Source: Macrostomum lignano (Eukaryota). Taken from it: 64,000 nucleotides of DNA. Made by a program: the position numbers and the translations under genes. Within the stretch, counting starts at the first letter, position 1. Each line of letters opens with the position of its first letter. The notes below the pieces were generated by a model, which was given only the letters and a program-made list of their open reading frames with translations, ran no database searches and had not been told where the DNA came from. The stretch spans positions 434,001 to 498,000 of the forward strand of contig NIVC01000180.1 of the NCBI GenBank assembly GCA_002269645.1. Direction: 5' to 3'. Below, in pieces: positions 20,374 through 51,462 of this stretch.

Positions 20374-23300
20374 ATGCTGCGGACACTGAGCTGCAGAAAT
20401 ACCCGGGCCCTGCTGCTGCTGGCTCTCTGGGCAGTCAGATGCCCTACGGGTAAGATCTTTTACCTACCTACCTACCTACCTTACCCACCTACCTACCTAA
20501 TTACCTGCAATACCAACCAACCTAAATGCCTACCTACCTACCTACCTACCTACCTACCTACCTACCTACCTACCTACCCTCCCAACTATCCTGCTACCTA
20601 TTTACTTTACTTACCTATCTATCTACCTAATCTACCTACCTTTCTACTTACCTATCTACTTACCTATCTATCTACCTATCTACTTACCTATCTACCTACC
20701 TTTCTACTTACCTATCTACTTACCTATCTATCTACCTATCTACTTACCTATCTACCTACCTTTCTACTTACCTATCTACCTACCCATCTACTTACCTATC
20801 TACCTACCTTTCTACTTACCCATCTACTTACCTATCTACCTACCTTTCTACTTACCCATCTACTTACCTATCTACCTACCTAATCTACCTACCTATCTAC
20901 CTACCTATCTACCTACCTATCTATCTACCTACCTATCTACTTACCTATCTACCTACCTATCTACCTACCTATCTACCTACCTATCTACCTACCCATCTAC
21001 TTACCTATCTACCTACCTATCTACCTACCCATCTACTTACCTATCTACCTACCTATCTACCTACCTATCTACCTACCTATCTACCTACCTATCTACATAC
21101 CTATCTACCTACCAAACTACCTATCTAATCAAATGCGGATTTGAGTATCTTAACGAACAATAAAAACTGCACAGACAGTTCAGCTGCTCATTCTTCCCCT
21201 CAGCTGCTCAGTTGAGCAGTCTTGCACTTTTAACTTTCCGAGAACTTATTTTTAGCATCGAGCTCACAAATGAACTCAAAATTTGTCACCGCTAAAATAA
21301 AAATTCGCAGCAACTGGCCTGGCGGCCCCCTGCATTGCGGCTGGGCTGAGCCAGACCTACCTGGCAGACAAGCTCAACCCCAGGACGAGCGGCGACCTCA
21401 CAGTGCTGCTCAACATGCCGCACAACAGGGTTTACTGCTCTGCACTGGCTGCAAAGTGAGCCTTTTCTATCCCCCCGACTGCTTTGACTGCCATTGGCTC
21501 TAAAGCGCAAGCTGATGTCTACTTTAAGTAGCATACTAAACTTTAAAAAAATTCATTTTATCTAGATACCAGCAGACACTGAATAAGCAATTTAGCTAGA
21601 TTTTTTCTTTCTTTTTTATTTTTTGAGATTGAGATGATAAAATTTACAACACTGAAAACACTTGCAATTACACCTGTCAGACATTAATTACACCTGCTAG
21701 TCACTAATTACACCTGCTAGTCAGTAATTACACCTGTCAGACACCAATTACACCTGCTAGTCACTAATTACACCTGCTAGTCACTAATTACACCTGCTAG
21801 TCACTAATTACACCTGCTAGTCACTAATTACACCTGCTAGTCACTAATTACACCTGCTAGTAAATAATTACACCTGTCAGACACAAATTACACCTGCTAG
21901 TCACTAATTACACCTGCTAGTCACTAATTACACCTGCTAGTCACTAATTACACCTGCTAGTCACTGATAACCCCTGTCAGACACTGATAACCTTTGTCAG
22001 ACACTGATAACCCCTGTCAGACACTGATAACCCCTGTCAGACACTGATAACCCCTGTCAGACACTGATAACCCCTGTCAGACACTGATAACCCCTATCAG
22101 ACACTGATAACCCCTGTCAGACACTGATAACCCCTGTCAGACACTGATAACCCCTGTCAGACACTGATAACCCCTGTCAGACACTGATAACCCCTATCAG
22201 ACACTGATAACCCCTGTCAGACACTGATAACCCCTGTCAGACACTGATAACCCCTGTCAGACACTGATAACCCCTGTCAGACACTGATAACCCCTGTCAG
22301 ACACTGATAACCCCTGTCAGACACTGATAACCCCTGTCTAACACTAATAACCCCTGTCAGACACTGATAACCCCTGTCTAACACTAACAACCCCTGTTAA
22401 ACAATAACTGTAAAAAACAAAAATATGCTAGAAGATTTGCAGACCCACAAGACGCAGGCCTTAAGACGCTCCTTTTGAAATCAGAACAAATTGAAATTTC
22501 TTCTAAAAATAATAGGTTCCTCATCCTCGGAGTCTGGGCCGAGCGCCACCATCTCGAGCTCAACCAGCCGCAGCCCTTCAACGGCTCCGCCCACCCGGAT
22601 GCCGCCAGCCGCCCCTCCTGGCGAGTCGTCGACGTCACGGAGGTGTCGCGGATCGCCGAGTTCGACTTCCTGATGGACGAATCGCACGGACTAATAAAGG
22701 ACACCGAGTACTTTGTAGCCCTCAGCGGCTGCAGCTCCACGCAGTGCAGAACGGCTGGGTTCGCCAAGTTCACCGCCTGGCAACAAGGCGGGGGCAAACA
22801 AAATCTCGTTGTCATCATCGCGGGGAGCGGCGCAGCCGTGGCGGTGGCGGCCTGCGTCATTGCGGTCGGCGTCACGATGGGGGTTCGAATCCGGTAGGCT
22901 TCAGACAGTGGAGTGGTTTCAAGTGATGGGGCTGGAGTGATGAGGCTGGAGTGATGGGGCTGGAGTGATGAGGTTTGAGTGATGAGGCTGGAGTGATGAG
23001 GCTGGATGATGGGGCTGGATGATGGGGCTGGAGTAATGGGGCTGGAGTGATGAGGCTGGAGTGATGGGGCTGGAATGATGAGGTTTGAGTGATGAGGCTG
23101 GAGTGATGAGGCTGGATGATGGGGCTGGATGATGGGGCTGGAGTAATGGGGCTGGAGTGATGGGGCTGGAGTGATGAGGCTGGAGTGATGAGGCTTGAGT
23201 GATGGGGCTGGAGTGATGAGGCTGGAGTGATGGGGCTGGACTGATGGGGCTGGACTGATGGGGCTGGAGTGATGGGGCTGGACTGATGGGGCTGGAGTGA

Positions 23301-51200: not shown

Positions 51201-51462
51201 CTGCATAATAAGCCGAATTCCAAATAAGCAAAGCCGTCGCATCCCGCCCGCACTGCAGCTGCTCCAAGAATGACATCGAGATGAGGGACAGCGGCGCCAG
51301 CCAACGCAGGTGAGGCTCGGCCGAGTCCGTGTTGAAATTTAAGTAAGTCACCTAATTTAAACTTCTGTTTTCACTTTTTCCAGCTCCGACCTTGAAGTGA
51401 TCAGCAACCATGAGATGCACACGGGCTTTGGCAAACTGGACCTGCCTGCTGGCAAGTTTTGA
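42255..51462 (+). CDS. Type I single-pass membrane protein, paralog B; exons 42255-42336, 43694-43838, 48441-48815, 48998-49069, 49184-49213, 49284-49361, 49433-49492, 49707-49754, 49861-49884, 49981-50019, 51259-51309, 51384-51462
   Basis: Signal peptide MRATAGLSASLPGVLLQLLSLCLRCLL. Exon 2 is the same length as in A (145 nt) and homologous (PC..NPR..G.L.VLL..P..RV.CS). Exon 3 is nearly identical to A. The tail is phase-2 micro-exons including CCC and TTYAEI. AATAAA lies at 51548. Confidence 0.72.
42348..42672. repeat. Perfect (TATC)n microsatellite, paralog B intron 1
   Basis: About 80 uninterrupted units. Confidence 0.97.
42990..43637. repeat. ~18-bp minisatellite cacagcacccgccacccc
   Basis: Direct; reverse-complement family at 55825-56072. 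Confidence 0.88.
43990..48375. repeat. Interleaved 24-bp (agacactttatcaagtagcctgtt) and 20-bp (agacactgataacacctgtt) arrays, paralog B intron 2
   Basis: 24-mer at 43990-45070 and 46615-46810; 20-mer at 45075-46615 and 46810-48375. Confidence 0.96.
50205..51075. repeat. Polypurine GA-rich low-complexity tract, paralog B intron
   Basis: Almost only G and A. Confidence 0.92.

Follow-up and report, generated by a model that had tools for sequence, protein, structure and literature searches.

Putative tandem type I membrane glycoproteins of Macrostomum lignano with a partly homogenised ectodomain and divergent, micro-exon-encoded tails

Paired receptors are characterized by linked genes, by near-identical binding domains that are kept by gene conversion and adopt immunoglobulin superfamily (IgSF) or C-type lectin folds, by a long-tailed inhibitory member bearing an immunoreceptor tyrosine-based inhibitory motif (ITIM), and by a short-tailed activating member, in which a charged residue of the transmembrane (TM) segment pairs with an adaptor containing an immunoreceptor tyrosine-based activation motif (ITAM) (PMC13358205). 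In PECAM-1 (CD31), a Tyr-motif tail is controlled by cassette exons, and skipping of exon 14 abolishes SHP-2 binding (PMC5664058). Here, we analysed a window of 64,000 nucleotides (nt) of genomic DNA from the free-living flatworm Macrostomum lignano (contig NIVC01000180.1, positions 434,001 to 498,000), which contains two tandem genes, designated A and B, that resemble these systems in some respects and differ from them in others. The adaptors LAT, PAG/Cbp, LAX and NTAL, which have ectodomains of few residues, and the Hydractinia Alr proteins, which contain Ig-like domains and are encoded in a large hyperpolymorphic complex, provide further points of comparison.

Genes A and B are tandem paralogs that probably encode Macrostomum-restricted, single-pass type I membrane glycoproteins, either receptors or adaptors, with modular Tyr docking or sorting tails. 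This reading is drawn from sequence analysis, for which splice junctions were read from the sequence and exons were joined by script. Gene A (20374-40640, + strand) has 12 exons and encodes 358 amino acids (aa), gene B (42255-51462, + strand) has 9-11 exons and encodes about 350 aa, and both contain an intact open reading frame (ORF) without frameshift and GT...AG splice sites at every intron. The genes are co-oriented and separated by a gap of approx. 1.6 kb, as A ends at 40640 and B begins at 42255. They follow a common layout that consists of a signal exon (76 nt in A, 82 nt in B, ending in phase 1 in both), an exon 2 of 145 nt in A and B alike, an exon 3 for ectodomain and TM segment (378 nt in A, 375 nt in B, ending in phase 2), and a chain of micro-exons. 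Repeat-masked BLASTN revealed a single strong self-match in the window (22477-22909 versus 48401-48831, 91.5% nt identity, E 7e-170), and a second, far weaker match in tblastx pairs both copies of exon 2 (21328-21444 versus 43711-43827, 48.7% over 39 aa). An earlier note on this DNA, made from the sequence alone, had proposed two co-oriented paralogs with the same exon layout and a 145-nt exon 2; self-BLASTN, tblastx, the models and the intact, canonical exon chains agree with this. Gene A does not end near 27 kb; its last four exons are located at 40164-40640.

The type I topology suggested in the same note is likewise supported. Both proteins have signal-type N-termini and one strong hydrophobic TM segment each (residues 169-200 in A and 170-202 in B), followed by RIR, and the TM segments NLVVIIAGSGAAVAVAACVIAVGVTMGV and NLAAIIAGSCAAVVAVCVIAIGVTLGV contain no charged residue. 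A conserved NGS sequon is present on the outer side of both proteins, and sequons are otherwise found only on the outer side and in the tail. The ectodomains are approx. 145 aa long and, as proposed, share four conserved Cys in the alignment of A and B. Exon 2 of gene B encodes two further sequons, and the glycosylation sites of the distal third differ between the two proteins.

The degree of divergence between A and B depends strongly on the exon. In exon 3, dS is 0.12 and dN is 0.044 (synonymous and nonsynonymous divergence, respectively), while exon 2 shows a saturated dS of 1.04 and its 49 encoded residues are only 39% identical. The corresponding dN/dS ratios are approx. 0.37 for exon 3 and 0.5 for exon 2, and stop codons are absent from both. 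The first 255 nt of exon 3 differ at only three positions, and its TM-coding 3' part is approx. 84% identical. This tract of homology extends approx. 70 nt into the upstream intron, where it is followed by a 20-bp minisatellite common to both genes (21666-22397 and 45065-48369), and it breaks off sharply 16 nt beyond the donor of exon 3. Because the near-identity includes synonymous sites and intron sequence and has sharp edges, gene conversion is a better explanation than purifying selection alone. These data indicate that exon 3, approx. 70 nt of the upstream intron and the adjoining minisatellite have been re-homogenised by gene conversion. Mosaic residues in other M. lignano copies, such as the protein model P0004, which mixes A-type FTAWQQGGG with B-type PQNLAAIIAGSCAAVV, fit repeated exchange.

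The tails of A and B align globally with z = 2.9 over shuffles, and their C-terminal exons are collinear (GTEN/RAYEASSQAEL/SSKNDVDRLNGA in A, GVEN/RALDRSMDLHREML/CSKNDIEMRDSGA in B). As far as these alignments tell, the tails are distantly homologous, exon by exon. Since exon number, phases and tail ends are collinear, the whole gene was duplicated in tandem, and the comparison shows that exon 2 and the tails subsequently diverged to saturation, whereas exon 3 was re-homogenised. As a consequence of this conversion, A and B hardly differ in the TM segment and in the adjoining two thirds of the ectodomain. Thus, the shared ectodomain described in the earlier note is confirmed for the part encoded by exon 3, but not for the residues encoded by exon 2.

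As a proxy for splicing, we used M. lignano protein models (P0001-P0016). The exons and repeats of the two genes are listed below, together with the models that support them.

Gene A:
20374..20449, + strand: exon 1, ATG and signal peptide MLRTLSCRNTRALLLLALWAVRCPT, phase 1 end, donor G/GTAAGA (sequence and model); junction with exon 2 used by P0001, P0002 and P0012
21311..21455, + strand: exon 2, 145 nt, for the N-terminal third of the ectodomain, including two of the four Cys; 100% identical to P0001 residues 16-52
21666..22397, + strand: 20-bp minisatellite in intron 2, adjoining exon 3 on its 5' side (TRF, BLASTN)
22516..22893, + strand: exon 3, 378 nt, encoding the TM segment and the C-terminal two thirds of the ectodomain with the NGS sequon and two Cys; P0003 100% identical over 159 aa; donor CG/GTAGG, an unspliced transcript would reach TAG right after RIR
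23458..23514, + strand: candidate cassette exon KRRPKAEDTNALQSEYNY (SEYNY), 57 nt, phase 2-2, canonical splice sites; in none of 11 A-type models
24297..24341, + strand: tail micro-exon DSNAYEQPSPVEMT, 45 nt; joined straight to the TM exon in P0001, 100% identical
26847..26909, + strand: tail micro-exon EYIYDVLNEGQSGQTGQQPA, 63 nt, YDVL matches YxxPhi; P0003 100% identical, also in P0005, P0007 and P0008
27143..27190, + strand: tail cassette micro-exon ENPYDEAEPDSQSTV, 48 nt; in P0005, P0008 and P0015, skipped in P0003
27276..27338, + strand: tail cassette micro-exon MQNFDAVPNSAYGASRACGG, 63 nt; in P0003 and P0005, skipped in P0008
27339..40163, + strand: 12.8-kb intron; junction spanned by P0005
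40164..40259, + strand: tail exon RQAATGSAANSAYMYMGAEGPSNSGGTLEYQ, 96 nt, YMYM fits YMxM; P0005 residues 191-222 97% identical
40348..40371, + strand: micro-exon WQNGTEN, 24 nt; P0005 residues 222-229 100% identical
40450..40482, + strand: candidate micro-exon (R)AYEASSQAEL (NRAYE), 33 nt, canonical sites; in none of 11 A-type models
40592..40640, + strand: last exon SSKNDVDRLNGAVDP with TAA stop; P0004 has a related segment AAKNDFDRLNGG, 8/12 identical as judged by eye

Gene B:
42255..42336, + strand: exon 1, ATG and signal peptide MRATAGLSASLPGVLLQLLSLCLRCLL, phase 1 end, donor G/GTGAGC
43694..43838, + strand: exon 2, 145 nt with acceptor ACAG/T, two Cys and the two extra N-glycosylation sequons; P0006 residues 11-46 100% identical
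45065..48369, + strand: 20-bp minisatellite in intron 2, 3.3 kb, same family as 21666-22397
48441..48815, + strand: exon 3, 375 nt, ectodomain and TM segment
48998..49069, + strand: cassette exon NKDQTTLRAIVCCCTKADYKETA, 72 nt, juxtamembrane CCC; in P0016, skipped in P0004, P0006, P0010 and P0011
49284..49361, + strand: tail exon VCDRQTAQLGTDSSASAAAEIPSSD, 78 nt
49433..49492, + strand: tail exon LGYTTYAEILSDVGRHDND, 60 nt, with TTYAEI (matches TxYxxI) and YAEI (matches YxxPhi); P0006 and P0010 100% identical
49707..49754, + strand: tail exon SGAGRSVAASSGSED, 48 nt
49861..49884, + strand: candidate micro-exon (RSSGVEN), 24 nt, collinear with the WQNGTEN exon of gene A; no supporting model
49981..50019, + strand: cassette exon ALDRSMDLHREML (ALDRS), 39 nt; in P0010 at 100% identity, skipped in P0006
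51259..51309, + strand: tail exon CSKNDIEMRDSGASQ, 51 nt, homologous to the last exon of gene A
51384..51462, + strand: last exon SSDLEVISNHEMHTGFGKLDLPAGKF with TGA stop; AATAAA approx. 90 nt downstream

Fifteen proteins match the putative ectodomain, all of them M. lignano models, and P0003 (159+21+21 aa) and P0013 match the window exons at 100%. Across the models, the TM-exon donor is joined in frame to five acceptors of tail A, including those of DSNAY (P0001), EYIYD (P0003, P0005, P0007, P0008), ENPYDE (P0015) and MQNF (P0014). The exons for ENPYDE and MQNF and the CCC and ALDRS exons of gene B are included in some models and skipped in others; one model, P0005, reaches the 24-nt WQNGTEN exon. 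All 12 model-supported tail exons are multiples of three and in phase 2, so that any subset keeps the frame, which corresponds to a cassette architecture. The tails therefore appear to be both spliced and alternatively spliced. Ab initio predictors rarely place exons of 24-63 nt at exact junctions, and on this basis we infer that transcripts underlie the models. The splicing predicted in the earlier note is reproduced as far as the joining of the TM exon to tail exons is concerned, but the SEYNY and NRAYE exons are missing from the A-type models. Likewise, the CCC cluster that it assigned to tail B is found in P0016, but as part of a cassette that P0004, P0006, P0010 and P0011 skip. Both genes have a TAG directly after exon 3, and retention of the following intron would yield a tail-less form.

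Several entries among these models require caution. The UniRef names of the near-identical P0001-P0015 clash (F5/8 type C, ricin B lectin, LamG, FN3, Neur_chan_LBD, Zonular occludens toxin, PLAT, Transposase and others) and were rejected, because near-identical proteins are named differently and none contains a Pfam domain. Two apparent fusion proteins, P0004, in which A-tail exons are fused in frame to gene B, and P0016, in which gene B continues into the antisense strand of the kinase exon downstream, were also rejected, because they need frame changes or a retained intron. Both fit read-through or polycistronic precursors, or the merging of models, and precursor transcripts of this kind have been reported for approx. 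7% of M. lignano transcripts (PMC5730564). The joining of A tail exons to B exons in P0004 hints at a homeologous locus with the same A-B tandem and at a possible co-transcription of A and B; merging of two models may equally account for it. For P0005 and P0016, searches by exact sequence returned no record of their genomic context.

The two tails differ markedly in their Tyr content, as the earlier note had pointed out. Tail A contains 11 Tyr in 159 aa, and seven of its nine exons encode at least one, in contrast to three Tyr in the 150 aa of tail B. The Tyr motifs and the CCC cluster quoted in that note are all present in the sequence. In shuffles of tail A, the YMYM motif, which fits YMxM, occurs with a frequency of 0.003, the five N.{1,2}Y motifs (three NxxY among them) with 0.018, and the two YD.[VLIA] motifs (YDVL and YDEA) with 0.008; YEQP is also found in tail A. 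TTYAEI in tail B fits TxYxx[VI], the consensus of the immunoreceptor tyrosine-based switch motif (ITSM), as had been proposed, but it is a single match with a shuffle frequency of 0.011 for that motif alone, i.e. a chance of approx. 1% per test in approx. 24 motif-by-tail tests. The CCC cluster of tail B is located approx. 13 residues from the membrane in its cassette exon. Neither the ITIM ([ILVS]xYxx[ILV]) nor the ITAM motif was found in tail A or tail B. The sole motif common to both tails is YxxPhi (YDVL in A, YAEI in B), which could just as well serve in sorting through AP complexes. More robust are the Tyr enrichment of tail A as a whole, its organisation with one motif per exon and the contrast with tail B.

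The YxxPhi motifs raise the question of whether the Tyr residues serve as sorting signals, i.e. for endocytosis via AP complexes and for basolateral or lysosomal targeting, in receptors for adhesion, matrix or cargo with isoforms that are trafficked differently. The segments ..YIYDVL in A and ..YTTYAEIL in B both fit YxxPhi, their micro-exons are alike in length (63 and 60 nt) and in order within the tail, and a CCC cassette would also affect membrane partitioning. On the other hand, most of the 11 Tyr in tail A are outside a YxxPhi context, and neither the repeated N-x-A-Y context nor that of YMYM is a sorting motif. As a complete explanation, sorting is possible but rather unlikely; it is not mutually exclusive with a function in docking.

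The comparison with paired receptors touches on a further explanation. The locus resembles them in its linked paralogs, in ectodomain sequence kept by conversion and in divergent cytoplasmic parts (PMC13358205). In contrast to paired receptors, conversion reaches here only the TM segment and the two thirds of the ectodomain next to the membrane, no Ig or lectin domain is detected, both tails are approx. 150 aa long, and neither ITIM, ITAM nor a charged TM residue is present. The locus is therefore somewhat like a paired system in its working without being a member of that class: it has the gene linkage and, in part, the near-identical ectodomain, but not the remaining features. The earlier note had considered a near-identical ectodomain with different tails as the hallmark of paired receptors, which applies to the linked genes and to the converted exon, but not to the signalling features or the fold. 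It is quite unlikely that A and B are true paired immune-type receptors, which bind the same ligand and transmit opposing signals as KIR, SIRP, PILR or Siglec-5/14 do, or an allorecognition system. The close linkage and common orientation of the genes, a single TxYxxI in tail B, and a converted ectodomain exon combined with divergent tails, which is typical of paired receptors (PMC13358205), are in line with this idea, but it is at odds with the absence of ITIMs and ITAMs from both tails, with the length of both tails, with TM segments that offer no charged residue for adaptor pairing, with the lack of an Ig or C-type-lectin domain in Pfam searches, with a distal ectodomain third that is only 39% identical and differs in its glycosylation sites, and with the presence of only two genes in 64 kb instead of a large cluster.

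The micro-exon tail appears closest in design to that of PECAM-1, in which the tail is also built from a string of small, alternatively spliced exons that include or drop Tyr motifs (PMC5664058). The single ITSM-type match in tail B may be a second likeness. In contrast, PECAM-1 has six Ig domains and a bona fide ITIM and ITSM, whereas the proteins described here have an orphan ectodomain of approx. 145 aa and no ITIM. Adaptors of the LAT/PAG type share with this locus the juxtamembrane Cys (CCC in tail B) and the multi-Tyr tail (tail A with 11 Tyr, YMYM and YEQP), but they differ from its glycosylated four-Cys ectodomain of approx. 145 aa, and here the Cys cluster (in the B cassette) and the Tyr-rich tail (in A) are found on separate paralogs. 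The Hydractinia Alr proteins likewise come from an invertebrate gene cluster, have a type I membrane topology and carry Tyr motifs in their tails; here, only two genes are present in 64 kb, and the searches detected no Ig-like domain. For SLAM/CD2-type ITSM receptors, the Ig V/C2 ectodomain has no counterpart in A and B, in which no Pfam Ig family was found.

Homology searches did not link the ectodomain to any described family. Pfam searches with the full N-terminal protein and with the ectodomain and tail of A and of B gave no family at E<=10, and a profile of the A and B ectodomains gave no chain at E<=10 among PDB sequences. A word-indexed search of 5.8 billion proteins retrieved only M. 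lignano models, and an exhaustive HMMER search of 1.84 billion representatives retrieved 10 proteins, all of them M. lignano copies; as far as the databases reach, the family is apparently restricted to this species. The UniRef models suggest at least four loci or alleles. Because only M. lignano sequences matched, a deeper alignment is not possible, and AlphaFold2 runs with and without the TM segment on a two-row alignment yielded unusable models with a predicted local distance difference test (pLDDT) score of 33 and 39. A Foldseek search of PDB with the better model gave a meaningless best match (E = 7, probability 0.01). The earlier note had suggested that the end of the ectodomain loosely resembles uroplakin-3 or the membrane-proximal domain of R3 receptor PTPs, a resemblance that neither the Pfam nor the PDB search supports and on which the fold search is uninformative. 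A highly diverged version of a known fold or family, whether Ig-like or of the uroplakin-3 or R3-PTP membrane-proximal type, is improbable for the same reasons, namely the empty Pfam and PDB searches, the restriction to M. lignano and the poor fold models. The spacing of Cys43, Trp56 and Cys121 is compatible by eye with an Ig-like core, which is a lead only, and some β-strands are seen in the low-confidence AlphaFold models. A search of the literature on Macrostomum together with immunoreceptor motifs found no papers.

That the tails are annotation artefacts, with products that terminate at the TAG behind the TM exon, or that the loci are functionless, decaying duplicates, is hardly credible: the TAG in both genes, the end of P0002 at the TM segment and the many frameshifted models could be taken in this sense, but every window exon is open with canonical sites, 12 micro-exons, down to 24 nt, occur at exact junctions in independent models, the dN/dS ratios given above come without stops, and the frameshifts fit indel errors of the older draft assembly.

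In the reading that we consider probable, tandem receptors or adaptors with modular Tyr tails, each protein would have a cleavable signal peptide, a four-Cys, N-glycosylated ectodomain of approx. 145 aa, one TM helix and a disordered tail of approx. 150 aa, built from phase-2 symmetric micro-exons. Splicing would set which short linear motifs each isoform carries, and intron retention after exon 3 may produce a tail-less form. Tail A is predicted to be a multi-site phosphotyrosine docking platform with YMYM (p85-type), YEQP (Crk/Abl-type), YDVL/YDEA and three NxxY motifs (PTB-type), while tail B would combine a palmitoylatable CCC cassette with a single YxxPhi/TxYxxI motif. The membrane-proximal module and the TM segment may provide for a common interaction, with a ligand or by homo- or hetero-oligomerisation. 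The pair would thus link a partly common input from outside the cell to partners or trafficking routes within it that differ between A and B.

Several observations weigh against this reading. The motif statistics are post hoc, because some motif classes were picked after looking at the sequence, and no single match is compelling or survives correction for multiple tests. Three exons lack support by any model (23458-23514, 40450-40482 and 49861-49884), and the supporting models come from an older, error-prone draft annotation with many frameshifts. The junction between exons 1 and 2 of gene B (42336 to 43694) was inferred from length, phase and Cys spacing common with gene A, with no model covering it; a competing, stronger acceptor at 43705 would break the frame. 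The exhaustive HMMER search provided no ortholog outside M. lignano in which the motifs could be compared, and the low identity of the exon-2-encoded third means that a common ligand is not assured.

The locus is rich in repeats. TRF masks 33,953 of the 64,000 bases (53%) of the window, which contains more than 40 distinct minisatellite arrays; many of these fill introns and create spurious long ORFs in several frames, e.g. at 24417-26917 and 43933-45165. This agrees with the published M. lignano genome, of which more than half is repetitive and which shows extensive duplicated sequence and widespread trans-splicing (PMC5730564). An Rfam search of the whole window gave no match. The long intron of gene A contains the following elements:

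27358-27520 and 39470-40145: 9-bp minisatellite AGAGTGACC at both ends of the 12.8-kb intron (TRF)
28145-28666, - strand: unexplained 173-aa ORF; sub-threshold Ndc1_Nup match only (E 6e-4, 19 bits versus a cut-off of 29.8)
29185-30234, - strand: unexplained 349-aa ORF; (AAAAE)n repeat, no homologs
31418-33337, + strand: intact transposase-family ORF, 639 aa
34235-34803: dense nest of palindromic sub-repeats downstream of the transposase ORF, with arms of at most 87 nt and 89% complementarity

The minisatellite at both ends suggests that approx. 12 kb were inserted into a once-short minisatellite intron. Relatives of the transposase ORF number 60 and come from M. lignano, insects, ticks, fish and environmental assemblies; PF13960 is present in some of them. 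The palindromic nest may be part of a mobile element. A search for terminal inverted repeats bounding the insert gave only internal palindromic sub-repeats.

None of the neighbouring genes suggests a functional cluster. Upstream of gene A, a coiled-coil ORF at 1046-1471 resembles SAS-6 by eye only, and it is followed by these features, the last of which is convergent with gene B:

5382-7008, + strand: GDA1/CD39 apyrase (E 4.7e-33) with minisatellite-filled introns
15192-15734, + strand: endonuclease/exonuclease/phosphatase-family gene (E 2.2e-7)
56500-57054, - strand: protein-kinase C-lobe exon (Pkinase E 2.5e-25), which we take to resemble DSTYK by eye

The connection of gene B to the antisense of this kinase exon in P0016 suggests read-through or a model artefact.

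At present, A and B count among the many uncharacterised, lineage-specific genes of flatworm genomes. In practical terms, the analysis provides corrected, intact gene models for a family of which public databases hold only fragmented, frameshifted and inconsistently named entries. The locus is also a clear case of exon-limited concerted evolution and a compact example of how signalling tails are assembled from in-frame cassette micro-exons. A more far-reaching idea, which we regard as speculative and unlikely, is that the pair is an independently evolved functional analogue of paired receptors in a free-living flatworm, in which an ectodomain with a previously unseen fold would have a membrane-proximal ligand-binding or oligomerisation module that is kept identical by ongoing conversion, possibly seeded by the minisatellite, and in which alternatively spliced, symmetric micro-exons would wire the two receptors to different phosphotyrosine or palmitoylation-dependent pathways. 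If this were true, a design of 'same sensor, different wiring' would have evolved outside of vertebrates and without Ig or lectin domains. As M. lignano is open to transgenesis and RNAi, this idea is testable in the animal itself.

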